Below the pieces are notes generated by a model, which saw nothing but the letters and a program-made list of their open reading frames with translations, was not told the DNA's origin and did no database searches. 64,000 nucleotides of DNA from positions 248,001-312,000 of IMG/VR virus record IMGVR_UViG_3300050120_000230; one strand, given 5' to 3'. The translations under genes and the position numbers were made by a program. Positions 514 to 62,906 of this stretch are shown here, one piece after another (position 1 is the stretch's first letter; each line of letters starts with the position of its first letter).

Positions 514-1650
514 ATGCGTGAGTTCATCAATCTCCTAGAGCAAGCCGACAACGTCACGCTCTATCGCGGCGACAGCGGCCCTGTGGAGAAGTTCGAACTG
601 GCCAAGACCGATTCAGGAGCTTTGCTCGGCATCGGCATCTATCTCACCGATAGCCCGGAAGTGGCTGGCGACTATACCGTCAAGGGTTCCCAAGACATCG
701 CCTATCCGTCAGGGCGCCGGGGCGAAGACAATTCGTTCAACGATCCGAAGCAATTGACCGCTGGGTATCTGCGGAAACTCATGAACGATGCTGGTTTCCA
801 ACAGCAAATGGACGACACGAAAAATCAGTGGCAGGACAAATATTACAGCCTGTCGCGAGATATCGATTGGACCGACCATGAACGTGCTCGTAAGGAGCGC
901 GACGAAATGCAAGCCAAGTTCCAAGCGGACTATCAGGTCGTCCGATCCAAGATGATCCGCGCCGCCGTGGCCAAGGCCAAGGCACAGTTCAAGGCGATTC
1001 GACCGAACCTACGGATGGTCAAGCTGACCACTGGGGAATACATCTTCACGAAAGTTGGCCGGGCGGCCAGCATCGCGAAGTTTATCGTGCCTACGGCCTA
1101 CCTCGAACGATGCCTTCATGCTGAGCGGCCTCTGCCTGATGATCTTCTTCCGATCATGAAAGCGGCTTTCGCTCGTGTGGCTCATGACAAAAACCCCGAT
1201 CAAAAATGGGACCTACGGGTTCGGAATCCCAAGGGGAACAACGGCGACGAAGACATTGGCCTTTCATTCGATGAGTTCATCGCAGGCTTTCGTAAAGCGG
1301 GCGCTCGCTACGCGTGGACGGACGAAGTTCGTGGCGGCAAGGGTGAGAACCCTTCGCTCGACATCCTCTGGAACGGCACGCACAGCGGCTATCACGTCTT
1401 CCAGAACAAAGAAGCACAAGAGACCCTCATGCATGAACTCATGGCCATGGGCTACGTCGGCTACGCCTACGACGGCGGCGTTCGTCTAGCTGGCACCGGT
1501 GCTCGTGGTGGCGGTGGCATTCGTCACAACGCCTACGTTCTTTGGGACGAAAATGCCGTTCATTCTTTCCGCGTCGAGGGCGGCGGGGTGACTGATGACG
1601 AAGTCGGTGACTTGGAAAAAGGTATCAAGGCAGCAAAAGTCCTGCGTTAA
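514..1650 (+). CDS. Putative virion-packaged ADP-ribosyltransferase-like protein (ART-PolyVal-like) with insertion
   Basis: N-terminus MREFINLLE; LYRGD...GIYLTDSPEVAGDY...GYAY...YVLWD motifs. Confidence 0.55.
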   Translation: MREFINLLEQADNVTLYRGDSGPVEKFELAKTDSGALLGIGIYLTDSPEVAGDYTVKGSQDIAYPSGRRGEDNSFNDPKQLTAGYLRKLMNDAGFQQQMDDTKNQWQDKYYSLSRDIDWTDHERARKERDEMQAKFQADYQVVRSKMIRAAVAKAKAQFKAIRPNLRMVKLTTGEYIFTKVGRAASIAKFIVPTAYLERCLHAERPLPDDLLPIMKAAFARVAHDKNPDQKWDLRVRNPKGNNGDEDIGLSFDEFIAGFRKAGARYAWTDEVRGGKGENPSLDILWNGTHSGYHVFQNKEAQETLMHELMAMGYVGYAYDGGVRLAGTGARGGGGIRHNAYVLWDENAVHSFRVEGGGVTDDEVGDLEKGIKAAKVLR

Positions 1651-1664
1651 ACACTAAATAGTTC

Positions 1665-2063
1665 ATGTTTTCGATGCGTGAACTGATGTTGATGGTCGAA
1701 ACCGAGCGTCCGAGAGAAGGGCCGCCGGTTCCCGACACGTTGTTCCATGGCACCGGTGAAGAAGCGTGGAATAGCATCCAAGAGAGCGACACCATGTATT
1801 CGTCGGATCACAGAGACGAAGACGCTATTTCCTTCACCACCGATTGGCACACTGCAAATCGCTTCGCACAAGCCGTAGCCAAGCGAGAGGGCGGCGCCGG
1901 AGTCATCATCGAGTTCAACGGTGACGATCTGGCTCGCAAGTTCAACGTCGAGCCATTTTCAGATAGTGGGCTGGTTCACGCCGAACAAGAATGGCTAGTC
2001 AAGGTTGGCAGCATCACACAGGTCACCCGCTATATCATTGGCGTGGAAAAGGTGTCCGCGTAG
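1665..2063 (+). CDS. Putative ADP-ribosyltransferase-fold protein with capsid-targeting-like N-terminus
   Basis: CTAAATA at 1654; LFHGT...SFTTD...A..FA...EQEWLV. Confidence 0.55.
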   Translation: MFSMRELMLMVETERPREGPPVPDTLFHGTGEEAWNSIQESDTMYSSDHRDEDAISFTTDWHTANRFAQAVAKREGGAGVIIEFNGDDLARKFNVEPFSDSGLVHAEQEWLVKVGSITQVTRYIIGVEKVSA

Positions 2064-2286
2064 GCGTAGTCATCAGATGAACAGTGACGCGGGCACGCAC
2101 GGCTTCGTGTCGTTGGTGATGTTCGGTGGGCGTCATTCTTGCCGCCTGATATTCAAGTTCTTGTAGGTCTTCTTGCTTCAAAACAACTTCGAAACCCCAG
2201 TCTTCTAGTTTTTCATGGATCATTTGCAGCAAGGTAGTCTTGCCAGCAGCATTCGGACCACGGATGTCGATGACAATTTCGTTCAT
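2035..2286 (-). CDS. Small protein with Walker A-like motif
   Basis: GPNAAGKTT near the N-terminus. Confidence 0.5.
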   Translation of the reverse strand: MNEIVIDIRGPNAAGKTTLLQMIHEKLEDWGFEVVLKQEDLQELEYQAARMTPTEHHQRHEAVRARVTVHLMTTPTRTPFPRQ

Positions 2287-2348
2287 TTTGCTTGACCAAC
2301 TCAGAATGTGGGATATCTTCAGGGCATAGGAACCAAGGAGATTATCCC

Positions 2349-3752: not shown

Positions 3753-4035
3753 AGGTCACGGTTACCAGCCCTCTAGCACAATTATCCGAGATAATCCAGT
3801 CGTAATAGACCATCTTGAATAGTGTTGCGTCAGCAAGACTCTTAAAAGAAAGGAAGACGAGGGTCGTTTGTTTCGTCCAACCGTCATTGTCCGGTTTGCC
3901 ATAGCCAGTTTTGGCTTTGGCTTTTATTCTGAAGTTGCAATTGGTGTTGAGCCACAGGATCATTTCATCGATCCATTCAGCAAACTTGGTGTCCTCGCTC
4001 GGCCCATCTAGATAGAACTTTGACCATTGGGTCAT
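3727..4035 (-). CDS. DAxxFK[LM]xW-family protein
   Basis: DATLFKMVYY. Confidence 0.7.
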   Translation of the reverse strand: MTQWSKFYLDGPSEDTKFAEWIDEMILWLNTNCNFRIKAKAKTGYGKPDNDGWTKQTTLVFLSFKSLADATLFKMVYYDWIISDNCARGLVTVTYDYDFEPR

Positions 4036-4547
4036 AGGAGAGCACGGCGCGTATTTTCTAGCATTTGCTCCGTCACCATTTGCTTCAGGATTTGACGTTT
4101 CGCTCTACGCTTTTGTTTGCTGCCTCGCGGCGCCTTTCGATATCGCACACGAAGCGCAAAAATCGCGGCCGTAGGTCCGGTCATCGGTTGCACGCCACAA
4201 ATGTCATAAGCGATGACATTCGGCATAGCACGGCGAACGAGCGAGATAAGAACGCGATTGAGTTTCTGTTCGTCGGTGATGATCTCCCCAGAGAAGAACA
4301 GCTTGAACAGAGTGGCGTCACGATTCGAGCGGAACTTCACCTGAATGAACGACGGCCATTTGAACTGTTCCCACGTCTGGCCGCCGCCAGAACTGCCGAT
4401 CTTCGCGACCTTGGCCGTCTTCGTTTTGTTGGCGCGCAACCATTCTTCAATGCGGTCGTGCATTTCGCGAAATTGATCGACGATTGCGTTCGCCGATGAA
4501 TTGGGACGCAGATCGGGCCGGAGGCAGAAAGTGGACCACTTGGACAT
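4032..4547 (-). CDS. DAxxFKL-family domain fused to a major-capsid (gp23) Gol-like segment
   Basis: DATLFKLFF followed by VLISLVRRAMPNVIAYDICGVQPMTGPTAAIFALRVRY. Confidence 0.75.
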   Translation of the reverse strand: MSKWSTFCLRPDLRPNSSANAIVDQFREMHDRIEEWLRANKTKTAKVAKIGSSGGGQTWEQFKWPSFIQVKFRSNRDATLFKLFFSGEIITDEQKLNRVLISLVRRAMPNVIAYDICGVQPMTGPTAAIFALRVRYRKAPRGSKQKRRAKRQILKQMVTEQMLENTRRALL

Positions 4548-8070: not shown

Positions 8071-8414
8071 GGCGTTCGCGGCGGCTGCACGGCTGGCATA
8101 GGGACGCTCGCGTTGAACGGCGGGAACATGGATTCGCCTGCATCCATTCTCGCTTTCGATTCGCGCTGACGAAGTTCAGAGCGCATCCAGCGGGGAATAA
8201 CGAGCAGGACGCCAAGCGCCATGATAATCGTGATGGCGAAAACGCCGCCCAGAACCACCATGTCGTTAATACGATGCTCACCCAGAGCGGCCACGGCGAA
8301 GACGGCCGCAATGCAGCCGTAGCAGAACCATGGAGCGATTCGCTGAGCCTTTGTCGGCGGGGGAAGCGGGGGCGCCTTACCCGTGAACATTTCGCTGAGT
8401 TCTTCTGGGGTCAT
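8067..8414 (-). CDS. Membrane protein
   Basis: Two TM-like segments. Confidence 0.55.
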   Translation of the reverse strand: MTPEELSEMFTGKAPPLPPPTKAQRIAPWFCYGCIAAVFAVAALGEHRINDMVVLGGVFAITIIMALGVLLVIPRWMRSELRQRESKARMDAGESMFPPFNASVPMPAVQPPRTP

Positions 8415-9721
8415 GCAACCATGCCGCCCGTTTTCTTTTCGAGATCGAAGTTCGCATTGATGAACTCGATCACGTCGTTCGCGGGCGTATGGCGAGAGAA
8501 AACGATGTTCGGCCCGTGACCATCGAGCATGACGACCTTCATGTCTCGGCGATAGTTCACGGCCGACAGGTTGCGGCTGGTGTTCTGACCGCATTGGTGA
8601 CTGCCACACTCGTTCTCCCATTGCGACGCCACGGGCACGGCGTCGGGATGATTTTCACGCAGGGGCGAATGGAAGTGGACGATGCAGTCCAATTCGGGAT
8701 GTTCACGGAACACGACGCGTTGCGATTGGCCGCCGACCGAAGGCTTCGCGCCGTAGGCGATCACCTTGTTGTCGCCTTCGTATTCGACCAGCACGAGACC
8801 TTCCTTGGAAAGTTCGTTGAAGTTCCGCTTACGCTTGGACGTGATGATCCGGCCTTCGTCCAGCTTCACAGCGAAGTGCCCAGCGGTGACCCCTCGGAAC
8901 GGCTTGTAGGCGCCTCGTTCGATGCAGTAGTCCACGACGGCACGAAGGTTCTCGGGGATCATCGGCGAATCCCACGAAACCGAATCGCCCTCGACGACGG
9001 TCGAGCGGGTGTAGGTGTTCTCGATCCGACTCCTGACCATCTTGGCCAGAGCCGCGAGGACTTCGGCGCGGTCGGTTGTCTCCGAATAGCGGGTTTCTTC
9101 CGGCGCCACGATCATGTTGTTGCGGGTGACCGTGTCATTGGCCAGCACGAGGTTCAGACTGTCGCGCTTCAGCATGTCGAGCGCGATGCGGTATTGTTCG
9201 TCGGACGTTGCATCCGTAGTGGTTTTGAAACCGACGACGAAGATGTCCTTGCGCTCTTTCCTGATCTTGCCGATCAGCTTGGAAGCTGGTTGGAGGGTGA
9301 GCATCTGAGTGCCATCAGATGTCTTGAGACGAGGGGCGTGCGGGCCGGATGCAATGTTGGCCGGAGGGCCTTCACCTCGAATATGGGCAAGATGTTTGTC
9401 TTCCCACTCCTGATCCATTGTCTGGACCACACTGCCAGTATAATCACAGAGGGCCGCGTTCAGGATGATGCAACGCGTGTCCGGGTCGGCGACGAGCTTT
9501 TCCAGCAGCGTCGAAACGTCGGCGTTGGTGACCAGAGGACTGCGGTAGTCCGCCATCTTCGTCAGATGCAGGTTCACGTCGTAGTCGTGTGGGTCGCCGA
9601 TATGCGGAGCGAGGTGCTCATGTAGCGCACGAGCAGAGTTACCGAAAGCGGGCGCGGCGAGGGCCAGATGGTTGCGAACGTAGTTGAAAGTTCCGCCGCC
9701 GATGATGTGGATTTTCTTCAC
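8411..9721 (-). CDS. CoaB-like (DFP C-terminal) domain fused to a class II aldolase/adducin-like domain
   Basis: IIGGGT, ILNAALCDY, VVGFKTT, LVLAND (CoaB-like); GHFAVK..IITSKR, IVHFH, VMLDGHG (aldolase II-like). Confidence 0.7.
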   Translation of the reverse strand: MKKIHIIGGGTFNYVRNHLALAAPAFGNSARALHEHLAPHIGDPHDYDVNLHLTKMADYRSPLVTNADVSTLLEKLVADPDTRCIILNAALCDYTGSVVQTMDQEWEDKHLAHIRGEGPPANIASGPHAPRLKTSDGTQMLTLQPASKLIGKIRKERKDIFVVGFKTTTDATSDEQYRIALDMLKRDSLNLVLANDTVTRNNMIVAPEETRYSETTDRAEVLAALAKMVRSRIENTYTRSTVVEGDSVSWDSPMIPENLRAVVDYCIERGAYKPFRGVTAGHFAVKLDEGRIITSKRKRNFNELSKEGLVLVEYEGDNKVIAYGAKPSVGGQSQRVVFREHPELDCIVHFHSPLRENHPDAVPVASQWENECGSHQCGQNTSRNLSAVNYRRDMKVVMLDGHGPNIVFSRHTPANDVIEFINANFDLEKKTGGMVA

Positions 9722-10233
9722 GAGGGTTCTTTCATGAGCTTGGCGATGGCTGCTTTTTCCTTCGCCTGCAAGTCGTGTTCTTGTGAAATGTTTACGCGCT
9801 CGCGCCACCGCATGAACGCATTGAAGATGATGACTTGAGCCACGGTCGTGTTCGTGTTTCCGTTCTCACGACGAAATCCGGGCATGTCCGTTCCATCGAC
9901 CTTGACAGAAATAGATCGAATTTCAACCGGACTGTTGCCGATTGGATCGGCCCCGACGAAGATATTGATGCCGAGTTTATCGTTCCCAATTCCGAATGTT
10001 TCTTCTTTCCAATCCGCAGGATGGGCGTCAAGAAGGTCCGATATTTTCTGCGCGAGTTGATTTGCGGTCGCCTCTTGCATCGTAGGGGGCACGGGGACTT
10101 CCGCTTGATGGTGAGGCGTCATACCAATCCACACCGCATAACCTACCGCACAGACCAAAGCCACGATCCCACACGTTTGCAGGATGAGCTTGAACATCGG
10201 GCTGGGTTTAGGGAACTCGCGGATGATCTTCAT
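9718..10233 (-). CDS. Membrane-anchored protein
   Basis: N-terminal TM helix. Confidence 0.6.
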   Translation of the reverse strand: MKIIREFPKPSPMFKLILQTCGIVALVCAVGYAVWIGMTPHHQAEVPVPPTMQEATANQLAQKISDLLDAHPADWKEETFGIGNDKLGINIFVGADPIGNSPVEIRSISVKVDGTDMPGFRRENGNTNTTVAQVIIFNAFMRWRERVNISQEHDLQAKEKAAIAKLMKEPS

Positions 10234-11231
10234 GGCATCAGGGGGAACTTACCGACGAACGGGCGGGCTTCGCCCTTCTTGGCGAACACGTAGGCACAAG
10301 TGTCGAGCGGGATGAGATGGAAGCTGGCGCCGTCGCGCAGCGGATAGCTCGGATCATGCGTGACGCCCGTATGCAGTCCAGCCGCATCGGCGGTCTCGAC
10401 GGCGTCACGCATTTCGCTCTCGGTCACCGAGAGGACGATGCAAGTCCCGAAGCCATAGGCGGCGGTCTCCCACGAATCCAAAAGGTCTTCCAGCGCGTCG
10501 CCGAGTTGATTCGGGACGGTTTCCCCCGCTTTCTTGCGGGCCTCAAACACCATCTGGTTGGCGGCGTGGGTGCCTTGCGCGACGGCTTTGCCCGCGTTCA
10601 TCGACGCGAGATCGTTCCGCATCAGAATGTAGAGATACGGTTCGGCATCCTGCGAATCGTCCACTTTGGGGTTCAGGGTTGCCCAGAGCGCCGTCACGGC
10701 GGGATCGAGGCTGTCACCGAACATCTTGTGCGCTTTGTGGGCGCGGACGAACGTCGAAGCCGATTCGACCAGATCAGGTTCACTGGCAATCTGGCCTTCG
10801 GTTTCTTCCAACAGGGCATCACGCAGGTTGTGCACTGCCTCTTCGATCAGGTCTTTGTCGCCACCCTTAACGATGTCAACGACCGACCTTAGACGGCCGC
10901 GAAGAGATTGCGGATTTTCGGCCGCCCACTCCGCAGGCGTGATGACGCTTTCCGGGGGTTGCGGAAGATCGGCCGCCATCGCCAAGGCGATTTCTTCCTT
11001 CAGCCCGTTGATTGCCGCTTCCACATCCGTGCGATTCGGGCGGGTCTTCGACGACACGTTGGAGTAAATGGCCAGTGCCGAATAGAGGTTCTGTTCGACC
11101 GGGCTCCGTGTCTCGCGAACATCTTGTTCCGAAAGGCGATATTGCCGGAAAATGGACAGGAGGTTCACGCCAGCGAGTGCATCGGACAGGAACATCCGGG
11201 TCGCGACGATAACATCGGTGAAAGAAGTCAT
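10230..11231 (-). CDS. Peptidyl-tRNA hydrolase 2 (Pth2) domain with long unknown N-terminal extension
   Basis: YLYILMRNDLASMNAGKAVAQGTHA...FGTCIVL...HDPSY...DTCAYVF. Confidence 0.75.
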   Translation of the reverse strand: MTSFTDVIVATRMFLSDALAGVNLLSIFRQYRLSEQDVRETRSPVEQNLYSALAIYSNVSSKTRPNRTDVEAAINGLKEEIALAMAADLPQPPESVITPAEWAAENPQSLRGRLRSVVDIVKGGDKDLIEEAVHNLRDALLEETEGQIASEPDLVESASTFVRAHKAHKMFGDSLDPAVTALWATLNPKVDDSQDAEPYLYILMRNDLASMNAGKAVAQGTHAANQMVFEARKKAGETVPNQLGDALEDLLDSWETAAYGFGTCIVLSVTESEMRDAVETADAAGLHTGVTHDPSYPLRDGASFHLIPLDTCAYVFAKKGEARPFVGKFPLMP

Positions 11232-11279
11232 TGGATGCCCCTCAGTGAGCAACCAGAATAACTCGTAAACGAGATCAGG

Positions 11280-11543
11280 TCAACGTTTTCTACGCCGTGC
11301 CAACCAATGCGGGCGATGAGGGTGATGGAAGTATTGCCAGACTTTCAGGCAGCCCCAAATTCCTTCCAGAAGACCGAAGGGCCACGCACCTTGCATGAAC
11401 CCATAGGCCGCCCCCGCCCAGCAAGAAAAGGCGAACACCATGGTGAAACGATAGTGTCGTTTCTCAACCATATCGCTGAACATCATCGCACTCACCGCCA
11501 ACAGACCGAAGATAGTCAGCAGATCGACGTGCGGAATGCTCAT
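11280..11543 (-). CDS. Small multi-pass membrane protein
   Basis: Three hydrophobic segments. Confidence 0.6.
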   Translation of the reverse strand: MSIPHVDLLTIFGLLAVSAMMFSDMVEKRHYRFTMVFAFSCWAGAAYGFMQGAWPFGLLEGIWGCLKVWQYFHHPHRPHWLARRRKR

Positions 11544-12094
11544 TTTTCTCTAACCTTGTGGTGGTCCACGGACAGATAGCTGGGTTGTTTGCGTAGATAG
11601 CGGCGGATTTCTTCCAGTGTTACTGGTTTCAACCCCATGTTGTCTACCCCCACATCACACGATTGATCTGTGCCGGGCAGCGATCCATGCGAGTGCCCGT
11701 AGAGCATGATCGCACCTCTGTGACTTTTGTTCCACACGCGCATGGAGTAATGGCACAGGACGATGAACTGCCCATCGAGATTGATCTCAAGATAGGGCTG
11801 GGACGATGTCCACTCGGGGAGTTGGCGAACCTGATTGCTGTCGTGGTTGCCCCAAATCAAGTGCTTCCGGCCGTTCAGCCGAGACAGAATTTGCGGCGCC
11901 GGAGTCTTACCCATGGCGAAGTCGCCAAGGTGGTAGATGTCATCGTCTTGATCGACGGCGGCATTCCAGTTTGCGATGAGGGTCTCGTCCATTTGGACGA
12001 TGGTGTCGAACGGGCGGTTCGAATAGTTCTTGCCCTCGTTCGTCATGTTGCGATGGCCGAAATGCGTATCGCTAGTAAACAGTGTCTTTTTCAT
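11540..12094 (-). CDS. Calcineurin-like metallophosphoesterase
   Basis: SDTHFGH, HLGDF, GNHD, LCHY, GHSHG. Confidence 0.9.
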   Translation of the reverse strand: MKKTLFTSDTHFGHRNMTNEGKNYSNRPFDTIVQMDETLIANWNAAVDQDDDIYHLGDFAMGKTPAPQILSRLNGRKHLIWGNHDSNQVRQLPEWTSSQPYLEINLDGQFIVLCHYSMRVWNKSHRGAIMLYGHSHGSLPGTDQSCDVGVDNMGLKPVTLEEIRRYLRKQPSYLSVDHHKVREK

Positions 12095-12128
12095 AATGAC
12101 ACTATATATCCAGAAAACTAGGCAATAG

Positions 12129-12452
12129 TCAATCTACAGCGGCGAGCCTCTCCGCAAAATGCATTTTGAAAATCACCGCATCGGTTTCTCTCGGGAAAGA
12201 AATGGCTACGTAGGAATGCGCGTTTCCCCACTCTTTCTTTGCATGAGTAGTCACCAATGTGAAATCATGCTCCATGTTATAGGTCCGCAAGAATTCACGG
12301 AGGCCCGACCACTCTTCATCCATCATTCGACTCAGCGAAACCACTTCGTAGACCGTCATAGGTCTAGTAAAGATGGTCCCTTGTTTTGTGGAATTCAGCT
12401 CATCGATGGTTAATGTGGCAGAAAACAACCTGAACTCAGTCTTCAACTTCAA
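12129..12452 (-). CDS. DAxxFK[LM]xW-family protein
   Basis: DAVIFKMHF. Confidence 0.65.
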   Translation of the reverse strand: MKLKTEFRLFSATLTIDELNSTKQGTIFTRPMTVYEVVSLSRMMDEEWSGLREFLRTYNMEHDFTLVTTHAKKEWGNAHSYVAISFPRETDAVIFKMHFAERLAAVD

Positions 12453-12897
12453 GACCTTTCATGACGGACAATTGCCCCTTCTCTGGGATCGGGCCGTCGA
12501 TGTCGAGCACTGTCACCACCATGGCTTGGCTCGTCTTATCGGCACGGTTGCGTCCTCGGATCACGATGACGGCTTTTTCTTCCTGAGAGATAATCACATC
12601 GTGGTCATCGTTTGGATCATATCGCCCGGCCGCCATAGCGCGGATGCGATCACGGACAGATTGTAGGTCCACGCCGTCGATGCGTTCAAGCCATCGGACA
12701 ATGGCATGGTCACTCACCATCAGGTCTTCAGGTGTGGTTTCGCTTTGTCGAATGGCGCCGTTCACAGCTTCGAACCGCGCAGCCATCATCTTTTGATCGC
12801 GAATCAAGCCGCGATTGGCCAAGGTCAACTCTTCCCTGATCCGATACAATTCGTTCAATGGAAGTCCGGCCAAGATCAAGGGATTGTTCTGCGACAT
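12436..12897 (-). CDS. Hypothetical protein
   Basis: VSDHAIVRWLER motif; downstream of TTGACG early promoter. Confidence 0.6.
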   Translation of the reverse strand: MSQNNPLILAGLPLNELYRIREELTLANRGLIRDQKMMAARFEAVNGAIRQSETTPEDLMVSDHAIVRWLERIDGVDLQSVRDRIRAMAAGRYDPNDDHDVIISQEEKAVIVIRGRNRADKTSQAMVVTVLDIDGPIPEKGQLSVMKGLEVED

Positions 12898-12937
12898 ACC
12901 TCCAATGTGGAGTGTCGGGTAGTTTTCGTCAACCAGA

Positions 12938-13543
12938 TTAGCGAATCTGTTCCACGCCGATGATATTCACCGGAGAGTTTTCGCGGATGCGAATTTCTTT
13001 TTCGTCTTCATAGTCAGGCATTATGTTCATCGCCAGCGTCGTGGTCCAATCCACTACCGACATGTTGACCTCGGCGGCGATCCGCCATTTGACGTTGCCT
13101 TCACTGAAATCGCCCCAGTGAGCATCAGCAGCATTCTTGTCCCATGACCAATAGATGCCGGGATGACGGGCATCTGGTTTCCAATCGGCCGGAGCGGTGA
13201 TGACACGATAAAGGGTGGCGTTGCCAGACGCGTCGAACAGGTGAGCGAAATTCCCCCAAGCATCCCAGAGACGTTCTTCGACCCAACCCTTAAACCAATG
13301 TGTGAACTCAGGCGTGTTGGTGTCTACCGCGCTCGTGTCTGATCCATCGAAATTATCGTGATTGATTTCGATTTCGTGCTCACGAGCGTAGGCGTATTTC
13401 ACGCTCGCGGCGCCACCAGCCTCGGTGCTCCAATCCATGTCGTTGTAGACCAGATTGAAAACGGCCTTGGCATCGACCAAGTGATTCGGCGTGGGAAGTT
13501 CCTCGGCCAACAAATTCTCGACGAGGTTGATGAAATCACGCAT
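12938..13543 (-). CDS. Putative ADP-ribosyltransferase-fold protein with capsid-targeting-like N-terminus
   Basis: MRDFINLVE; LYRVI...GIYWSWD...EKEIRI (R-S-E-like); CTAAATA 4 nt upstream. Confidence 0.55.
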   Translation of the reverse strand: MRDFINLVENLLAEELPTPNHLVDAKAVFNLVYNDMDWSTEAGGAASVKYAYAREHEIEINHDNFDGSDTSAVDTNTPEFTHWFKGWVEERLWDAWGNFAHLFDASGNATLYRVITAPADWKPDARHPGIYWSWDKNAADAHWGDFSEGNVKWRIAAEVNMSVVDWTTTLAMNIMPDYEDEKEIRIRENSPVNIIGVEQIR

Positions 13544-13550
13544 CCGATAT

Positions 13551-14189
13551 TTAGGCGGTGGCAGGTTCCATATGACCGTGCATCGCTTCGATCAATTCGA
13601 TCTGCGTCCGCAGCATGTGCTTGATGTTCTCGTAGGCGAGCGCCTGATGCGGGAAATTGCGGCGTGCGGCCTTCAGCATCGGGAAGAACAGCTTCTCCGC
13701 TTCGCTGATGTAGGACTTCTGCTTGGCCAACGTGAAAACGCCCACCATGGATTGCAGATTGTGGATGCGGTCGCAGCCCTTGGCGATGCTGGCGATCTCA
13801 TCCTCGCCCATGGCGGCGAACAGCTTCGCTTCGTCCTTCTTGGCTCCGCGCCATTCCTTGGTCATGTTCTCGACCGCGCGACTGACACGTTCGGCGAAAG
13901 CTAGATCGGTGGCGAACAGCGACCGAACCTCCGCATCAGTGATGTGGTAATCCTCGCGCACGTCGTGCAGGAAAATCGTGGTGATAATCTCTTCACGGTA
14001 GCGCAGGTTGGGGAGCGTCAGCGCATACAGCGCGATGCTGATCTGGTGATCGAACTCCGGCGTGAAGCCGTCTTTGCGCGTGCCGGTGTGGTGCTTCGCG
14101 GCAAACTCCATCGCCACGAGGGCGTGGTAGTATCCGGCGCCTGCGAGATACTGTCGGAGCGTGAGTGCTTTCTTCTTGAATTTGTCCAT
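13551..14189 (-). CDS. RelA/SpoT-type HD domain hydrolase (Mesh1/SAH-like)
   Basis: FAAKHHTGTRKDG.TP...H, LHDVRED, V..MTK, KGCDRIHNL. Confidence 0.8.
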   Translation of the reverse strand: MDKFKKKALTLRQYLAGAGYYHALVAMEFAAKHHTGTRKDGFTPEFDHQISIALYALTLPNLRYREEIITTIFLHDVREDYHITDAEVRSLFATDLAFAERVSRAVENMTKEWRGAKKDEAKLFAAMGEDEIASIAKGCDRIHNLQSMVGVFTLAKQKSYISEAEKLFFPMLKAARRNFPHQALAYENIKHMLRTQIELIEAMHGHMEPATA

Positions 14190-15684: not shown

Positions 15685-15691
15685 CCCCTAT

Positions 15692-15964
15692 TTAGGAGAG
15701 GAACATCTTCAGAATGGTCAAGTCATGCTGCATACGGTCAAGGTCGCCGTTCTGTCTGACTATCCCGCTTGGATTCCACTCCATGCTCCACACGCGGCCG
15801 ACCTGTCCATCGTCGTAGCGCATCAGGAACCAGTGCGTCTTACCCTGATGCGACGCTGAGCAGGCCCACATGACGATACCTTCAAGCTTGGCCTCGCCAC
15901 CCGCCGACAGTTCTCGCAGATTCTTCCACGCGACCTTGGCGGTCTCTAGTTGAGACTCGCTCAC
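15692..15964 (-). CDS. GD..F..D subfamily protein
   Basis: NGDLDRMQHDLTILKMF. Confidence 0.6.
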   Translation of the reverse strand: MSESQLETAKVAWKNLRELSAGGEAKLEGIVMWACSASHQGKTHWFLMRYDDGQVGRVWSMEWNPSGIVRQNGDLDRMQHDLTILKMFLS

Positions 15965-19405: not shown

Positions 19406-19422
19406 TATTTAGTCCCTAAATA
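19406..19422. promoter_or_regulatory. Back-to-back late promoters (TATTTAG / CTAAATA)
   Basis: 19406-19412 on minus and 19416-19422 on plus; each 4-5 nt from a start codon. Confidence 0.7.
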
Positions 19423-23760: not shown

Positions 23761-23805
23761 CCGATATTTATGTGCGTTTCGACCGGCATCTGTTAGGATT
23801 CAAAA

Positions 23806-45827: not shown

Positions 45828-46285
45828 CGGTCAAGGACTTGTCTAATCTTCTCGATACGCTGGTCGTCGATGACACGCGCTCGATCATTCTCGTTCCAAA
45901 GCAAACGCCGAATCACCTAGACTCAGCGCACTCCATCCCACCGGAATATTTGTGGATGATTCCGTTGTCGGCGGCTGGACACTACATCATCCACGACCAC
46001 GCCAAAGAACCAGAGGGCATACAAGCATTTGAGCATTGTAGGTCACCGATCATTCAATACGATTTGTATGATGACCGTAGCTTCAGCTACCAGCGCACTC
46101 GTCTCCACGACATGGGCATGACACAGTGGTGCGAAGAAACCCTTCGCGGCCACTACATCGTGCGTAAGAACTATGAGGCGGTTTTGCCGCCGCCGAGCGT
46201 CAAAACGATCATCGAAGTCTGGTTCGATGACCCAGTGGACGCCGTGGTTTTCAAGATGCGATGGAAGGGCAACCCATGCGAATAG
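45821..46285 (+). CDS. DAxxFK[LM]xW-family protein
   Basis: WCEE...DAVVFKMRWK. Confidence 0.7.
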   Translation: MVTVKDLSNLLDTLVVDDTRSIILVPKQTPNHLDSAHSIPPEYLWMIPLSAAGHYIIHDHAKEPEGIQAFEHCRSPIIQYDLYDDRSFSYQRTRLHDMGMTQWCEETLRGHYIVRKNYEAVLPPPSVKTIIEVWFDDPVDAVVFKMRWKGNPCE

Positions 46286-46578
46286 AGGATCGCCCGAACA
46301 TCGCTCTTTCGCATCTTGACCTTCAAGATGGCAGGCACGAGGACATCAGCGATCTGCCTATCGTCGTCGTGCCGTTGAAAAACGTCTGTATTTCTGGTGG
46401 CAGCCTTGCATTGGCGCCCGAGACTAGGCATTGGCTAATTGCCAACGTCGGCCACCAATATCGTGGCGAGCAGATTTCGTGCTGGGATTATATCCTCGCA
46501 GAGAGCGCCACCGGGCTCGCGACGTTTCGGTTCAAAGACGTAACGCACGCCACCTTGTTCAAAATGTTCTTCTCATGA
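46276..46578 (+). CDS. DAxxFK[LM]xW-family protein
   Basis: HATLFKMFFS. Confidence 0.7.
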   Translation: MRIEDRPNIALSHLDLQDGRHEDISDLPIVVVPLKNVCISGGSLALAPETRHWLIANVGHQYRGEQISCWDYILAESATGLATFRFKDVTHATLFKMFFS

Positions 46579-46832
46579 GTTCCGATCTGGATCGCGTGGC
46601 CGAATTGAACACGTTGATGAAGATGTTCGGCATCGACGGGAAAGTCATGTTTTTCCCAAAAAACTCGCTGCCCTTTCATCTCCAAGGGATTTTTCACGGC
46701 GTGCATCAGGGAACCTCACGTAACTCGGTGGCCGAGATCGAACAGTTCGTGCAAGACCTCATCAACGAGGACAAGGCGCCGGGCTTGGGCGTGCAACTGC
46801 AAACGACCATCGCCAAGCGTGCTGCGAAATGA
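46575..46832 (+). CDS. ELNxLxKMF-family protein 1
   Basis: RVAELNTLMKMFG. Confidence 0.7.
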   Translation: MSSDLDRVAELNTLMKMFGIDGKVMFFPKNSLPFHLQGIFHGVHQGTSRNSVAEIEQFVQDLINEDKAPGLGVQLQTTIAKRAAK

Positions 46833-47074
46833 TCCGCGATGATTATTACCGCGATGTGTGCCCGCGCATTGGTAAGCTCAACGTGCTCCTTAAGCTCTAC
46901 GATCTTGGGGAGATCACGGTTGGGATGACGGCCGACTATCGCCAGCAATTCACTCATCGAATTGGGGCACCCGAGCACGAGAATTACACGGTGCGCTGGA
47001 CGCTGGATTCCATCGAACACCACGTCAATCTGCTGATCGGCATAAAACAGCGAAGGATTGCAAGTGGCGAGTAG
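46829..47074 (+). CDS. ELNxLxKMF-family protein 2
   Basis: RIGKLNVLLKLYD. Confidence 0.7.
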   Translation: MIRDDYYRDVCPRIGKLNVLLKLYDLGEITVGMTADYRQQFTHRIGAPEHENYTVRWTLDSIEHHVNLLIGIKQRRIASGE

Positions 47075-47408
47075 CGAACTCGGCGCGGCGCTCGAACGTC
47101 TTGGTGTTGAGCCGAAAGCGCATCTCGGTGGTTATCGCACGACGCTTGAGCGGTTCGACCACATCAACACGCTCTTCAAAATGTTCGGCATAAAGGCCGA
47201 AGCCGGTATCCGCGCGCCAATGCCGTTTGACGACTATCGATATTTCAACATCATCGTCGAGATCACAACGGTGCACGACAGTGGCACGCAGATCACCCGC
47301 ATGGGCTATCCCTTCAAGACGACCAATGAGCTTGCGGCCTTCGCCGACACTCTGATCCGGCGCGCTCAGGGCCTAGAACCAGAAATCGAAGAGTGGCGCC
47401 ATGCGTGA
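47064..47408 (+). CDS. ELNxLxKMF-family protein 3
   Basis: RFDHINTLFKMFG. Confidence 0.7.
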   Translation: MASSELGAALERLGVEPKAHLGGYRTTLERFDHINTLFKMFGIKAEAGIRAPMPFDDYRYFNIIVEITTVHDSGTQITRMGYPFKTTNELAAFADTLIRRAQGLEPEIEEWRHA

Positions 47409-47595
47409 TGATCGCATGGACGAATTGAACACCCTATTGAAGACGTTCGATACGGGTCTAAGCGTCGAGCCGTTTTCAGGCGGGTATCCGCCGACCAGCT
47501 ATGCCCTGCTCGAAGACAAGTTGATCGTCTTCATCGGCGCTTTTGAGGCAGTCGAGAAAATGGGGCACAGCCGAATGACAGAGCAAAACCAGTGA
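47401..47595 (+). CDS. ELNxLxKMF-family protein 4
   Basis: RMDELNTLLKTFD. Confidence 0.7.
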   Translation: MRDDRMDELNTLLKTFDTGLSVEPFSGGYPPTSYALLEDKLIVFIGAFEAVEKMGHSRMTEQNQ

Positions 47596-47891
47596 AGCGG
47601 ATGTCGATCACCGAGCGGGATGCCGAGATCAAGGCGCTCAACGTTCTTTTCAAGATGTTCGACATCCACGCCGTGGCTCATTACGACGAGGGTAAACCGA
47701 ACAGCAATGCCGGATGCTGGCGGCCGTATCCCTTTCGGATAGGGACCTTCGAGACGACCGAAGGGACTGGTGCTCGTGCCGGATCGTTGCGCGAAAAGAT
47801 GACAACGAAATACATGTTCTATTCGCTGCAAGAACTCATCAAACAGGTCCATATCATGGTCAGCGAACATCAAACGAAAGAAGTCGCGTGA
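47592..47891 (+). CDS. ELNxLxKMF-family protein 5
   Basis: EIKALNVLFKMFD. Confidence 0.7.
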   Translation: MKRMSITERDAEIKALNVLFKMFDIHAVAHYDEGKPNSNAGCWRPYPFRIGTFETTEGTGARAGSLREKMTTKYMFYSLQELIKQVHIMVSEHQTKEVA

Positions 47892-48175
47892 CCTGTCCAA
47901 TTCGTTCGGCAAAAGCGAAAGAAGCGTGGGCGAGGCGGCGGCAGAGAAACGACCGCTGCGACGAGTTGAACACGCTGCTGAAGATGTTCGACCTGAACTT
48001 CGTGACCGGCTATGCCGACCGTGAGCGGCGAATGTCGAAACAGGAGTTCAACGACTATCGCTATCGGCTATATGGCATGGGTCCGGCCATTTCGATGGAA
48101 TACTTCCACACGCTCGAAGACCTCACACGGCGAGTGAACGTGCTTATCGGAGAGGTGTCCGGTGTCCGAGTTTGA
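47888..48175 (+). CDS. ELNxLxKMF-family protein 6
   Basis: RCDELNTLLKMFD. Confidence 0.7.
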   Translation: MTCPIRSAKAKEAWARRRQRNDRCDELNTLLKMFDLNFVTGYADRERRMSKQEFNDYRYRLYGMGPAISMEYFHTLEDLTRRVNVLIGEVSGVRV

Positions 48176-49911: not shown

Positions 49912-49931
49912 GACGATCCTAAATAAAGTCG

Positions 49932-50471
49932 ATGTTTACTTTCAAGATCACCGGACTGCAAGACGCTCTCGATCTTCTCGACATGGGTTGGCCGACCAAA
50001 ACCGTGACCGTCATCCAACGTGGCGCCAACGTTTACCCGAGAGACGACACGCACATCGTCGTCGCGATGAGCGACGTGGGCGATCCGAAGATGAGCCCGG
50101 ATGCACCTCATCCGAGGCACCTTCGTTCGATCCTTGCACACACGGCCAACCTCACCGATCAGGATATGCTTCTGGTGAACTGCTGGGCGGGCCAGAGCCG
50201 TTCTACGGCCGCCGCGCTGGCAATCCTCATCCAACACGGTTGCACCCCACAGGAGGCTTTAGACCGCGTTGTGGATGAACGTCCAGTCGCGCTGCCGAAC
50301 GTCCTGTTCGTGAAGCACATCGACAAATATTTCGGGCTGAAAGGTGAACTGAACAAGATCGTCAAGGCGTTCATCAGGTCCGAACTCGCGAAACCTTATA
50401 TCAGGAACACCACACCGTCTGCGGAAAGCGTAGACGAGATGAAACGATTGATGTCGCTGTTCGGTGATTAG
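49932..50471 (+). CDS. Cys-based protein tyrosine phosphatase-like protein
   Basis: LVNCWAGQSRSTAAA (CX5R); CTAAATA at 49919. Confidence 0.85.
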   Translation: MFTFKITGLQDALDLLDMGWPTKTVTVIQRGANVYPRDDTHIVVAMSDVGDPKMSPDAPHPRHLRSILAHTANLTDQDMLLVNCWAGQSRSTAAALAILIQHGCTPQEALDRVVDERPVALPNVLFVKHIDKYFGLKGELNKIVKAFIRSELAKPYIRNTTPSAESVDEMKRLMSLFGD

Positions 50472-50878: not shown

Positions 50879-50931
50879 CAGGTATTTAGCAATTCGGTTG
50901 ACGAAATCAACCGATCCGTTAGGTTTGAACG

Positions 50932-52198: not shown

Positions 52199-54136
52199 AT
52201 GACCGAACCCTACGATCACGCGACCGTCGAGCAGAAATGGCGCCAGTTCTGGGCGAAATCACGCCTGTTCGATCAGGCGCTCGCAAGCCGGACGAAGACG
52301 AAATACTACGTGCTGGAAATGTTCCCGTATCCCTCGGGTCGCATCCACATGGGGCATGTCCGCAACTACGCCATCGGCGACGTGCTGGCGCGCTACAAGC
52401 GCAGCCAAGGCTTCAACGTGCTTCATCCCATGGGCTGGGACGGCTTCGGCCTGCCCGCTGAGAACGCGGCCATTGAAAATGGCACGCACCCTGCGGACTG
52501 GACGTTCGCCAACATCGCCGCCATGCGTGAGCAATTGAAGCGTCTGGGCTTGTCCGTGGACTGGACGCGCGAAATCGCGACTTGTGACCCGGCGTACTAC
52601 GGTGAGCAGCAAAAACTCTTCCTGCGGCTGCTGTCCGCTGGTCTCGCCTATCGCAAAGAAAGCGAAGTCAACTGGGACACCGTGGACAACACTGTGCTGG
52701 CCAACGAACAGGTCATCGACGGTAAGGGCTGGCGCTCGGGTGCACCTGTCGAGAAGCGGATGCTGACCCAGTGGTTCTTCCGAATCACCAACTACGCCGA
52801 TGAACTGCTGGACGGTTTGAAGACCCTGTCGAACTGGCCGGAGAAGGTCAAGACGATGCAGCAAAACTGGATCGGCAAGGACGAAGACGGCAACACGATG
52901 CTGCGCGACTGGGGCGTGTCTCGGCAGCGGTATTGGGGTTGCCCGATCCCGGTGATCCATTGCACCGAGTGCGGCATCGTCCCGGCCGAAACGCCGGTGA
53001 TCCTGCCAAAAGATGTGGACTTCACAATCCCCGGCAACCCGCTGGCCAACCATCCGACGTGGAAACACGTCGCGTGCCCGACGTGCGGCGAGGATGCGAC
53101 GCGTGAGACCGACACCATGGACACGTTCGTGGACTCGTCGTGGTATTTCGCCCGCTTCGTCAGCGCCGACCCCGCGAACCCGATCTGCGATGCGGGCATC
53201 GATCATTGGATGCCGGTCGATCAATATGTCGGTGGTATCGAACACGCCATCCTGCATCTGCTGTATGCCCGGTTCTTCACCAAAGCGTTGCGCGACACGG
53301 GCTGTTGGCGAGTGGACGAACCATTCACCGGGCTGTTCACGCAAGGCATGGTCACGCACAAGACCTATCGAACCGTGATCGGCAAGGAATGGGTCTACCC
53401 GGAAGAAGTGACCCTCAACAGCGACGGCGTCACGGCCAAGATGACCGCCACCGGACTTCACGTCGAAATCGGCGCGGCCGAGAAGATGTCGAAGAGCAAG
53501 AAAAACGTCGTCAGTCCTGACGCGATCTTCGACAAGTATGGCGTCGATGCCGCCCGCCTGTTCGTGCTGTCAGACAGCCCGCCGGAGCGCGATTTCGTGT
53601 GGTCCGAAGCTGGTGTCAAAGGCGCCGCAGGATTCATCCAGAAAGTCTGGAACGTCATCAACGAACCCGATGGCGTGCCGGACCAAACCAACATCATCCT
53701 GACCCACCAGACGATCAAGGACGTGACCGATTGTCTGGACAACTTCAAGTTCAACAAAGCGGTCAGTCTCCTGCATGTTTTCGTAGCCGGGATCACCGGT
53801 AAGGCCGACGTGGCGACCAAGAAAATTCTGATCCAACTGATCTCGCCGATGACGCCACATCTGGCCGAAGAGGCATGGCACGATCTCAAGGGTTGCTACT
53901 CCATCGTGGATGAACCGTGGCCGACGTTCAATCCCGCTCTGTTGGTGCCGCCGAACGTCACCATGCCGGTGTCGGTGAACGGCAAGCGCCGCAGCGAGAT
54001 CGTTGTCCCGCTGGATCACGCCGACGACTTGGTCATCGCCATTGCGACGGCTGATCCCGAAGTCATGCGCTTCATCGGCGATGGTGTGAAGAAAGCCATC
54101 GTCGTCAAGAACCGCATCGTAAATCTGGTGGTGTGA
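52199..54136 (+). CDS. leuS: Leucyl-tRNA synthetase lacking the CP1 editing domain
   Basis: [89 protein letters not shown]. Confidence 0.97.
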
Positions 54137-60422: not shown

Positions 60423-60461
60423 TTTGGTTGACCAATTCAACTATCGAGATATCATTACCGT

Positions 60462-60812: not shown

Positions 60813-60878
60813 CGATGATAACTGTCGAGTTCCGGCGACAGGAGAGCTTCGCGTGCGATCCTCGCCGCCTCTTGCTTC

Positions 60879-61649
60879 GTGCTGTTCTCGCACGGCGAAG
60901 CGGCTACACCGAAGCATAACCGTAAGAACGCGGATGCGACGAGACGTTATCAGGAGCTTATGGAACGGCAGGGCGAGTTCGTGGAATGGTGCAAGACCAA
61001 TCTGCGCGGCCTCTATCGCATTCGCACCGATGTGCAGGCGAGCATCTACATCTGCACCACTCTGGAAATCACCAACGACATCGACGCTCTCTGTGTGAAG
61101 ATGTGGTGGCAAGATGATTTCGATGAGTCCAAAGACAACGTCATCATCGGCAAATCGCACGACGAGTGGTTGTGGGCGCCGCCGTCGCGTCTGTTCGGCG
61201 ACAACGAGCCATCGTTGGCCCTCGAAATCGACAAGCAAGGCCAATGGGGCAACAGTGGCTTCGTCAAGCGGGGACCTCTCATGCATCCGAGCGGTGTCCC
61301 CTACACCTTCGCTGAAGGCGTTCAAACTGGGCTCGCGGGTGATCCCTACTTCACGCCGACCATCGAGACGAAAGATCGTCTGCTGGCGCTGGCGCCGACC
61401 GAAGAGCAACGCGAAATCTTCATCAAATACTGCTCGGACTACGTGATGGTCCATGCGTTGAGCGAGCCCATCACCGACACCATTGTGGATGACGTGATCT
61501 TCGACGCCATCGTTTCCGTCGATGACGACAAGGCTGAAGCCTTCGAGACGATCTGGGCCAGCGCCTTCCAGCGTTTCCGGCGAGACAACCTGATGACTTC
61601 GGCCCTCAGCAAACTGGCCGTGGCTCATGTGACAAGGCCGGTGTCCTAA
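60879..61649 (+). CDS. DAxxFK[LM]xW-like N-terminal domain fused to an unknown domain
   Basis: EWCKTNL.G.Y...DALCVKMWW. Confidence 0.65.
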   Translation: MLFSHGEAATPKHNRKNADATRRYQELMERQGEFVEWCKTNLRGLYRIRTDVQASIYICTTLEITNDIDALCVKMWWQDDFDESKDNVIIGKSHDEWLWAPPSRLFGDNEPSLALEIDKQGQWGNSGFVKRGPLMHPSGVPYTFAEGVQTGLAGDPYFTPTIETKDRLLALAPTEEQREIFIKYCSDYVMVHALSEPITDTIVDDVIFDAIVSVDDDKAEAFETIWASAFQRFRRDNLMTSALSKLAVAHVTRPVS

Positions 61650-61656
61650 ATATTGG

Positions 61657-62229
61657 ATGCCGACCCTGCTAGAAATGTTTGGAATTACCGAGGCCGTCCG
61701 GTCGGGGCTGCTCTATCATGGCACCGACGCGGACAATGCCGAAGAAATCCTGACCACGGATCGTCTGACAGCTTCGACACCTCATAACGCAAAACCGCTT
61801 CGGGTCGTGAAAGGGATCAATCGCGAAGTGCCGATTGGTTTCCGCAAGCATGAGATCGAGCGATTCGACAATGTCTATGGCGTGTCAATGACTCGCGATC
61901 CGAACTTTGCTCGCCGGTGGAAAAGCGGTCAGGGCATCGTGTTCTGTTTGTCCGAAGAAAAACTTCGCCACAATTATCGAATCTTGCCGATCAACTACTA
62001 TGGCGACCGCTCCGAGTCGGAAGAGTTTGTGGTCGGTCCAATTCAACCCGTCTCGCGTTATCTTGTGTCCATCGAAGTCTCTACTTCTGTGATGCAGGAA
62101 ATGATCGATGACAATGAAATCTGGCCGCCGGGCGAGGGTCGATATTCGAAACTGGTGGAGCATCCGTTGCTTCGCGTGAACGGCCAGCGATGGGATTCCA
62201 GAACCGGGATCGTGTCCCGCGCGGCCTAG
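61657..62229 (+). CDS. Putative ADP-ribosyltransferase-fold protein with capsid-targeting-like N-terminus
   Basis: MPTLLEMFGITEA; LYHGT...VSMTRD..FA...ESEEFV; CTAAATA at 61646. Confidence 0.55.
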   Translation: MPTLLEMFGITEAVRSGLLYHGTDADNAEEILTTDRLTASTPHNAKPLRVVKGINREVPIGFRKHEIERFDNVYGVSMTRDPNFARRWKSGQGIVFCLSEEKLRHNYRILPINYYGDRSESEEFVVGPIQPVSRYLVSIEVSTSVMQEMIDDNEIWPPGEGRYSKLVEHPLLRVNGQRWDSRTGIVSRAA

Positions 62230-62906
62230 CTATACTGCTCAGGCTGATCGACTACGAACCATTCGGCCTGCGGCCCGCTCATATGGCTTTCGTCGGTCAT
62301 TCGCATCCGCCACTTCAAAATATCTTCGAGCGCCACTCCCTGAATAGGACGGTTGATCTCCAAGACGACGCCGGTGCGTTCCGCGAAGTTCTCGGCCGTG
62401 CCGCGATTGGCAGACCATGAATGGAAGCCACGCTTGTTGCTTCGTTCCTGACGGAACGGTTGCTGGCCGCGATAGAGATGTTTTGTCACCAACGGGTGGA
62501 TGCGTTTCAAGATCGCAAGGAAACGAGCCGAGAGATCGAGATTTTCTTCTGCGTGATCGGCATTCCAAGTCCAACCTCGCAGGAAGCCGATCAGACCATC
62601 ATCCGCCGCAATGAGCGCGCAAGCTGTCTCGTAGCTTACGGGCCTGTCGCTTTGACGTAGGGCTGGGAGGGCTGCGATGAGTTTGTCTATGGCTCTACCT
62701 TCTGCTCGACGAAGGACACCCCGGACGCGCTCGCTCTCGATTTTTTTCAGGGCTCCATCCACGCCGCCACCCAAGCGGATGTAGAAAGCGACATCGTCCG
62801 GCGACAGCGGGTATTTTGCGAAACGATCAGCATCTTGCGGCTCGATCCCGAATGCCTTGTAGGCATCGTAATCCACCGCCTCGTTGATGATCTCGAACCA
62901 ACGCAC
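62226..62906 (-). CDS. Putative R-S-E type ADP-ribosyltransferase with capsid-targeting-like N-terminus
   Basis: MRWFEIINEA; LYRG...FHSWS...TA..FA...QAEWFV. Confidence 0.6.
   Translation of the reverse strand: MRWFEIINEAVDYDAYKAFGIEPQDADRFAKYPLSPDDVAFYIRLGGGVDGALKKIESERVRGVLRRAEGRAIDKLIAALPALRQSDRPVSYETACALIAADDGLIGFLRGWTWNADHAEENLDLSARFLAILKRIHPLVTKHLYRGQQPFRQERSNKRGFHSWSANRGTAENFAERTGVVLEINRPIQGVALEDILKWRMRMTDESHMSGPQAEWFVVDQPEQYS

Follow-up and report, generated by a model that had tools for sequence, protein, structure and literature searches.

The stretch of DNA analysed here (the window) comprises 64 kb, ~248,001-312,000, of the IMG/VR uncultivated virus genome UViG 3300050120_000230, a contig of 415,409 bp from an uncultivated phage, and it contains 11 genes whose products, labelled P1 to P11, begin with a similar short peptide, the tag. 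The window has a G+C content of 55%, and 6 kb of it gave no DNA match among 50,697 phage records. Its proteins place the contig among the Atu_ph07 / Phosso / SCTP-2 / PA5oct / Rak2-like jumbo myoviruses: the gp15-like tail completion protein encoded at 34369-35697 is 40-42% identical to those of Atu_ph07 and Phosso, and further matches that support this placement come from a gp14-like adaptor, a virion protein and two class I aminoacyl-tRNA synthetases.

All 11 N-termini were recovered where the first-pass annotation of the window had reported them, nine of them starting with ATG and two with GTG (VRIFQLFE at 19428 on the plus strand and VRWFEIINE at 62906 on the minus strand). The GTG start of the 19428 gene is supported by an 85%-identical ortholog, which has ATG at the same place. 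The tag occupies the first 6-12 residues and follows the consensus M-[RK]-x-x-hydrophobic…[LIM]-x-E, with Pro2 in P10; outside this segment the 11 proteins have nothing detectable in common and show no BLAST similarity to one another. The same annotation had described a late motif 4-5 nucleotides (nt) upstream of ten of the genes, and this too holds, as TAAATA lies at 4 nt in nine cases and at 5 nt in one (19428). The 62906 gene lacks a TAAATA of its own and is located 7 nt behind a 446-residue DUF6926 gene that has one. One start carries a caveat: the motif near 1665 lies 4 nt before an ATG whose product is MFSMRELMLMVE, so that the Met of MRELMLMVE, at 1674, is the fourth codon and the 1665 start adds three residues (MFS) ahead of it.

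The link between the tag and the motif is statistically strong. TAAATA occurs 22 times on the two strands of the window, where 5.7 are expected and none of 100 shuffles gave that many, and TAAATA-N4-RTG is found ten times against 0.21 expected. The pattern MR-x(2-10)-[LIVM]-x-E is present in 7 of the 11 TAAATA-adjacent genes versus 3 of the 113 other called genes (Fisher p = 5e-7), and two of these three are P2 and P11 themselves. The pattern used in the first pass was loose, since [LIVM]-x-E alone falls within the first 16 residues of 21 of the 113 other genes; the signal is the combination of tag, Arg2 and promoter, and this association is not due to chance.

Table 1 Tagged genes of the window and associated features (window coordinates)
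Feature	Position	Strand	Length (aa)	Tag	TAAATA	Assignment or note
TAAATA of P1	504..509	+				4 nt before start codon
P1	514..1650	+	378	MREFINLLE	504-509	N-terminal domain ART-PolyVal-like, sub-threshold
P2	1655..2063	+	129-132	(MFS)MRELMLMVE	1655-1660	minimal paralog of P10 family
P3	12938..13553	-	201	MRDFINLVE	13548-13553	R-S-E ART candidate
P4	15100..15694	-	194	MRSHEIFE	15689-15694	T7 gp0.7-like protein kinase candidate
P5	18781..19411	-	206	MRAHEIMTE	19406-19411	tag, 58-residue KOW-like module, C-terminal Cys/His domain
P6	19417..20036	+	202	(M)RIFQLFE, GTG start	19417-19422	ART-PolyVal member
P7	22000..23770	-	586	MRLVELF…LLSE	23765-23770	long acidic tract
P8	32302..32947	-	211	MREGTINE	32942-32947	PHROG 2803 and 25721 (function-unknown families)
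P9	50468..50888	-	136	MDIRKALTLITE	50883-50888	no function assigned
P10	61647..62229	+	190	MPTLLE(MFGITE)	61647-61652	predicted DarT/Tpt1-like ART fold
P11	62226..62906	-	226	(M)RWFEIINE, GTG start		second gene behind late gene; R-S-E ART candidate
DUF6926 gene	62914..64000	-	446			3' part in window; heads P11 transcription unit

TAAATA behaves as a late promoter core because it also lies ~27 nt before neck and tail genes of the window (the gp14-like gene at 30187, the gp15-like gene at 34369 and the gene at 32989, with Shine-Dalgarno-like sequences between), and in the T4 record TATAAATA shows the same spacing (~27 nt) before alt, gene 22 and gene 24. Late expression of the tagged genes is predicted from this motif, which abuts 10 of the 11. 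They are dispersed one by one within blocks of non-late genes, and P5 and P6 share a pair of back-to-back promoters at 19406-19422. A scan of 1-20 kb for promoter and terminator consensus sequences returned counts equal to chance, and therefore provides no evidence that the cassettes have terminators of their own. Late transcription in T4 starts ~5-6 nt after the motif. With such a start TAAATA-N4-ATG leaves no leader, which suggests that the tagged genes may be translated from leaderless late mRNAs, perhaps at a low level of the kind needed for tens of copies in each head. The omics paper on PA5oct contains nothing on late promoter motifs or propeptides.

Relatives of the tagged proteins argue that the tag is selected at the level of the protein and not of the DNA, because orthologs keep it with synonymous changes, behind a normal leader in an AT-rich relative, and on different domains. 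P1 retains the tag in orthologs of 65% and 27% identity, the former carrying MREFINLLE with changed codons. The latter belongs to the AT-rich relative (457 kb), in which MTGIRKWINIITE opens the P1 ortholog and MTDIRFFMNIVTE the P3 ortholog; both genes lie behind TATAAATA or AATAAATA, a ~25-nt leader and then a Shine-Dalgarno site. Across the P3 family, the strict form of the tag is present in 26 of 53 homologs and the relaxed form in 40, compared with 2 and 11, respectively, of the 114 other window genes, and one P3 homolog begins MKTFKQFLFE. When P11 homologs possess extra N-terminal domains, the tag is again found at the start. P10 homologs preserve M-P-x-L-x-E-[LMI]-F, with M1, L4 and E6 nearly invariant, while P7 orthologs keep both the tag and the abutting TAAATA (MRLFELF…, and MNFKQWLILSE in a distant phage). 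The C-terminal domain of P5 also has stand-alone homologs, whose N-termini read MRLVEAE, MRMIEIIEA or MKLSRILE, and the P9 variant of the tag, MxDIR…[LI]-x-E, recurs in the AT-rich relative as well as on a 510-residue neighbour outside the window. In the AlphaFold2 model of P11, residues 1-8 are unstructured, with a predicted local distance difference test score (pLDDT) below 50, which places the tag outside the folded part. A Sec or Tat signal peptide was considered and rejected: the hydrophobic core is too short and the tag is acidic.

The first-pass annotation had likened these N-termini to the capsid-targeting sequence of phage T4, and the T4 record indeed has MKTYQEFIAE at the start of IPII and IPIII. 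The N-termini of other gp21-processed T4 head proteins in the same record are …STITE (IPI), MELITE (Alt), MAKINELLRE (gp24), MLKEQLIAE (gp22), MEGLIE (gp67), MLLIPE (gp68) and …LLIE (gp21). An N-terminal peptide of ~6-12 residues ending in [LI]-x-E on otherwise unrelated proteins is likewise found in all 11 tagged proteins of the window, with Met in place of Leu/Ile in P2 and P5. In T4, a 10-residue capsid-targeting sequence is sufficient, residues 4 and 7 serving targeting and residues 8 and 10 processing, and it is the only element that the otherwise unrelated T-even internal proteins have in common (PMC9026906, PMC3012670). Of the readings considered, a T4-like propeptide on unrelated late enzymes has the best support, since the tag matches T4 N-termini and is conserved in orthologs; capsid targeting itself is what we infer. 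Overall, the first-pass interpretation is borne out in part.

A protease of the family that would process such a peptide is encoded in the lineage. A search with T4 gp21 retrieved homologs in Rak2-like phages (K64-1, pEa_SNUABM_47), and at least hundreds of IMG/VR contigs, many of them 300-600 kb long, encode a gp21-type protease beside a scaffold and a gp23-like capsid protein. In one such contig, which derives from the same metagenome as the 65% ortholog of P1, the capsid sequence L-L-E|S aligns exactly with the T4 gp23 maturation site L-T-E|A. An S77 peptidase has also been reported for group 2 jumbo phages, Atu_ph07 included (Iyer et al., PMC7824862).

Close inspection of the proteins behind the tag points to a diverse set of predicted enzymes, foremost ADP-ribosyltransferases (ARTs). 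The first pass had counted at least five to six ART-like proteins; of these, P6 is firmly assigned, P10 and P2 are good candidates, and P1, P3 and P11 are suggestive, with no significant match. None resembles T4 Alt in sequence. P6 is a Pfam-level member of ART-PolyVal (PF18760, 46.4 bits against a gathering cutoff of 31.2; 51.4 bits for its ortholog). The AlphaFold2 model of P10 (pLDDT 72.6, predicted template modelling score 0.72) matched DarT (7omv) in a Foldseek search of the PDB with a probability of 0.99, E = 3e-3 and a template modelling (TM) score of 0.43, followed by NarE, Tpt1 and the SidE mART, and the P10 family has invariant H21, S77-x-T79 and E120-x-E122; these results make a good case for a DarT/Tpt1-like ART fold. 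By homology to P10, P2 is a good candidate for this fold, as hhalign relates it to the P10 family at 95.7% (E = 1e-8) with the H, S-x-T and E-x-E elements aligned, and it also gives a weak Pfam match to Tpt1/KptA. Neither P10 nor P2 matches Pfam DarT at E <= 0.1, and the neighbouring genes showed no macrodomain match and no DarG-like partner. Both look like ART-fold enzymes directed at nucleic acids (DarT/Tpt1 type) and not like protein ARTs.

The remaining three candidates are suggestive on the strength of an invariant R…S…ExE arrangement or of sub-threshold matches. P1 and two orthologs match Pfam ART-PolyVal with E = 2e-3, 3e-4 and 4e-4, and DUF3990 as well; because their scores are 19-22 bits and the threshold is 31.2, P1 is not filed as a member of the family. 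An hhalign comparison of P1 with P6 gave a probability of 9.5%, in register at the H/R-G motif. The P3 family comprises 53 homologs, and R113, W-S-W (S133) and E181-x-E183 are invariant in the 33 that were aligned; its structural neighbours in the Atlas are RES, DUF3990 and ADPrib_exo_Tox at TM 0.38-0.45, and P3 has no match in Pfam, in the PDB (P3-family profile against PDB sequences) or in isolated phages (tblastn). In the P11 family the invariant residues are R146, S163-x-S165 and Q213-x-E215. The P11 model (pLDDT 80.5) retrieved nearly exclusively R-S-E ARTs from the PDB (ART2.2, C3, ExoS, CDTa, iota, Vip2), at E >= 0.13 and TM ~0.27, and several ART-bearing proteins among mixed matches from BFVD, where E never fell below 0.04 and TM was ~0.3. 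With no match below E 0.04 and TM ~0.3, the Foldseek result for P11 is not counted as proof of an ART.

Judged by their conservation, the triads of the P3, P10 and P11 families (H-Y-E or R-S-E) are catalytic-type residues. We are rather confident that at least four of the six candidates are ART-fold proteins; the window encodes no fewer than three such proteins, and probably six, which fall into four or more unrelated families. None of the six matches Pfam ADPrib_exo_Tox (PF03496), in hhalign the P11 and P3 families each stayed below 1% probability when compared with T4 Alt, and the hhalign pairs P11-P10, P6-P10, P3-P11, P1-P11 and P1-P3 revealed no relation beyond the N-terminal tag. Searches of PDB sequences by phmmer with P1, P4, P5, P6, P7 and P11 produced no meaningful match. 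In isolated phages, P1, P3, P6 and the KOW-like module of P5 found nothing except one metagenome-assembled record (P6) and one partial weak match (P1).

The other tagged proteins are more heterogeneous. The kinase that had been proposed for the set is P4, which matches PHROG 15752 (E = 2.8e-5) and PHROG 2828 (E = 6.7e-5) weakly and has a precomputed match to PF27024 (Phage_T7_kinase) that is itself marked weak, but local Pfam and PDB searches gave nothing; P4 is a weakly supported candidate for a T7 gp0.7-like kinase. For the proposed peptidase, P5, which would be of the papain-like cysteine type, the Cys and His residues of the C-terminal domain are invariant in eight homologs, but there is no match to a peptidase profile and the assignment is unconfirmed; P5 and seven homologs of this domain have no Pfam family, and P5 has no PDB match. 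The KOW-like module (P5 residues ~10-70, …LP.I.VGDEVKVGKFKNRKA.VKGF…) recurs at 60-86% identity in at least 267 clusters of proteins of 67-2,236 residues. It stands at the N-terminus, directly after a tag-like peptide, in 73 of the 143 best matches and is elsewhere internal or C-terminal, fused to GNAT, DUF6934, ART-PolyVal, amidoligase, GH19 and RNA polymerase fragments. The module belongs to no Pfam or PHROG family and has no match among the 50,697 isolated phage records. P7 has no Pfam, PHROG or PDB match.

The tagged set extends past the end of the window and includes a counter-defence enzyme. The start of the DUF6926 gene and its TAAATA lie just past that end, with the motif 22 nt before the ATG, a Shine-Dalgarno-like TGGAG, and the N-terminus MSHSDHMRHLIDLANGKITE. 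Further on (L097:11889-14911), a tagged 510-residue protein (MADIRKFMDMLSE) has TAAATA 4 nt before its ATG and CCTAAATACCGC directly before the ATG. Translationally coupled to it is a 496-residue protein that carries an Acb1 anti-CBASS domain (Pfam, 128 bits) right after MKIEDLFE.

Several other features of the window merit description. The two synthetase genes (39941-41422 and 52199-54136, plus strand) encode proteins of 493 and 645 residues with N-termini that are 32% identical, and the shorter one matches a phage synthetase PHROG profile partially and may be truncated or split. The untagged gene at 49920-50471 (plus strand, 179 residues), with TAAATA 6 nt before its ATG, contains the C-x5-R phosphatase motif CWAGQSRS and matches Pfam DSPc at E = 1.6e-5, below threshold. 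P3 is surrounded by a block of metabolic or repair-type genes (8411-14189, minus strand) that includes a DFP/aldolase-II fusion (8411-9721), a PTH2-domain protein (10230-11231), a metallophosphatase-like protein (11540-12094) and an HD_4 protein (13551-14189). Within a non-structural gene block, the 143-residue protein of 4032-4463 (minus strand) includes ~50 residues that show 49% identity to residues 90-142 of T4 gp23 and 63% identity to the major capsid protein of a huge phage; this is a free-standing version of the N-terminal segment of a capsid protein, possibly serving as a decoy or a chaperonin-targeting piece. Finally, arrays of small paralogous genes (60-150 residues) occupy 24-29 kb and 41-48 kb, with products ending in …F-K-[ML]-[RF] (for example 24822-25229, 25742-26002, 26220-26477 and 46261-46578) and stop codons that overlap the next start codon (TTCAAGATGCGATGA), and a second small-gene set (46575-48175) shares an N-terminal …LNTL[LM]K[MT]F… motif.

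Taken together, the observed motif, its link to the promoter, its conservation at the protein level, the absence of homology between its carriers and the fold and family assignments lead us to infer a pathway of targeting, cleavage, packaging, ejection and enzymatic activity. Each gene would be transcribed late, from the T4-type late promoter core TAAATA. The first 6-12 residues of the product (M-[RK/P]-x-x-hydrophobic…[LIM]-x-E) would then, as the capsid-targeting sequence does in T4, dock it to the scaffolding core inside the prohead, and a gp21-family (S77) prohead protease would cleave after the Glu of the tag. The mature enzyme would be retained in the capsid with the DNA, enter the next host cell alongside it, and act there before any phage gene is expressed. 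The cargo would be a mixed set of host-modifying and counter-defence proteins, namely the ART-fold proteins, the T7 gp0.7-like kinase, the Cys/His enzyme and, past the window, the Acb1 phosphodiesterase. We give a probability of roughly two in three to this reading, a capsid targeting of the T4 type, as known for the internal proteins and Alt (PMC3012670, PMC9026906), that has been extended to a larger and more enzymatic arsenal. It is supported by the nature of the cargo, whose predicted functions are typically early ones (ART-PolyVal, DarT-like, T7 0.7-like kinase, Acb1) and yet stand behind late promoters, as is the case for T4 Alt.

Several observations weigh against capsid targeting. The motif is short and degenerate, with Met in place of Leu/Ile at the P3 position of P2 and P5, and Pro2 in P10. 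Two TAAATA-abutted genes, at 30445 (virion protein) and 49932 (phosphatase-like), carry no tag. P8, which is Ser/Thr-rich and lies beside neck and lysin genes, is for these reasons possibly a processed structural protein and not an enzyme. The protease, the scaffold and the major capsid protein of the phage's own contig were not among the matches listed, and by local tblastn the head module is absent from contig positions 243-318 kb. In addition, the candidates encode Arg2 by CGT in six of eight cases, whereas CGT accounts for ~20% of Arg codons in the window, so that some constraint at the nucleotide level, beside the promoter, is possible.

The alternative that survives best, which we nevertheless hold to be unlikely, accepts the tag as a genuine N-terminal signal but has the proteins act late in the same cell without being packaged or injected, for instance by docking at assembly sites, by undergoing regulated turnover or by modifying components of the phage or the host ahead of lysis. 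Action late in infection is equally compatible with late promoters, and the phosphatase-like gene at 49932 is an example of a late-motif gene without a tag. This explanation has more difficulty with the tag, which ends in [LI]-x-E, the motif cleaved by T4-type prohead proteases, and resembles T4 propeptides residue for residue, and with the enzyme types (ART-PolyVal, T7-like kinase, Acb1, DarT-like), which are those of take-over and counter-defence and would be useful at entry; moreover, the literature infers head packaging for many phage ARTs (PMC9503650).

It is quite improbable that the tagged proteins are parts of the prohead core or scaffold that are targeted and then degraded or expelled, in the manner of T4 gp22, gp67 and gp68. 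P7, with a long acidic tract like that of scaffold-region proteins in related contigs, and P8, which looks structural, would suit such a role, and these two are at most the proteins that a scaffold-only function fits. At least three ART-fold enzymes with invariant catalytic-type residues, a kinase-like protein and the Acb1 neighbour do not, and beyond the tag the proteins lack the internal [LI]-x-E sites that scaffolds typically have in large numbers. Least credible is that the N-termini are a functionless by-product of nucleotide constraints in the initially transcribed region or at a leaderless start, as might be read from the lack of room for a leader in TAAATA-N4-ATG, the over-represented ATG-CGT and the identity of P1 and P3 at 24 of their first 30 coding bases, given that codon changes in orthologs leave the peptide intact, that in the AT-rich relative it is preceded by a 25-nt leader with a Shine-Dalgarno site, that homologs extended in front by extra residues or domains are still tagged, and that P11 is tagged without the promoter.

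The predicted capsid targeting shares features with several known systems. As in T4 IPI, IPII and IPIII, a short N-terminal peptide ending in [LI]-x-E is found on unrelated proteins with predicted late expression, a gp21-family protease is present in the lineage, and the cargo is diverse and fast-evolving. In contrast to the small basic inhibitor proteins of T4, the cargo here consists of predicted enzymes of 130-590 residues; the consensus is M-R-x-[FW]-[IM]-x-[LI]-x-E and not MKTYQEFIAE, and the genes are scattered single units with the promoter abutting the start codon. T4 Alt, an ART with late expression whose short propeptide (MELITE…) is cleaved by gp21 and which is injected with the DNA, offers a close parallel, although the six candidates belong to other ART-fold families, with no detectable relation to Alt. 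ART domains of polyvalent proteins and MuF-ART fusions have also been predicted to be delivered from the head (Iyer et al. 2017, 2022), and both P6, as a Pfam-level ART-PolyVal member, and the KOW-like module of P5, which is fused elsewhere to ART-PolyVal, GNAT and amidoligase, connect the window to these systems; unlike them, the domains described here stand alone with their own tag and are not fused to MuF, a portal or giant multidomain carriers. P10 is predicted to share the fold of DarT, the DNA ADP-ribosyltransferase of DarTG, and of Tpt1/KptA (probability 0.98-0.99 to DarT structures, TM ~0.4), and P2 by homology to P10, with the invariant H, S-x-T and E-x-E; in contrast to DarT, both lack sequence-level membership of that family and a visible DarG-like neighbour, and they are phage-encoded and tagged. 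For the ejection proteins of the phiKZ group, to our knowledge, no simple N-terminal tag has been described. Those of phiKZ, SPN3US and 201phi2-1 are similar in that many head-internal proteins are cut after Glu by a gp21-related protease and ejected (PMC9026906), whereas these phages are nucleus-forming, possess their own RNA polymerases and have an S/A/G-x-E cleavage logo.

Earlier work on MuF fusions, polyvalent proteins and gene context had concluded that phage ARTs are packaged in heads (PMC9503650), so that the kind of system is known, and what is new is the variant with a stand-alone tag in this clade, together with the breadth of that variant. A bolder and, as a whole, doubtful extension would see tag and late promoter as a portable capsid-delivery code across a large clade of huge phages, with dozens of injected enzymes per genome (DarT/Tpt1-like ARTs, kinase and Acb1 among them), the 58-residue KOW-like module, found in hundreds of protein clusters and in polyvalent proteins of 2,000 residues, as an internal docking domain, and leaderless late mRNAs, produced where the promoter abuts the ATG, as the means of keeping cargo copy number low.

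If the tag works as in T4, the injected proteins of uncultured huge phages could be read directly from sequence. In the window this would single out no fewer than three ART-fold enzymes, perhaps six, belonging to four or more unrelated families, together with a kinase and a Cys/His enzyme, and the tagged Acb1 next door would imply that host take-over and counter-defence begin before phage genes are transcribed. The tag would moreover supply short peptides with which foreign proteins could be loaded into large capsids, and would point to new ART families that may act on protein or nucleic acid.

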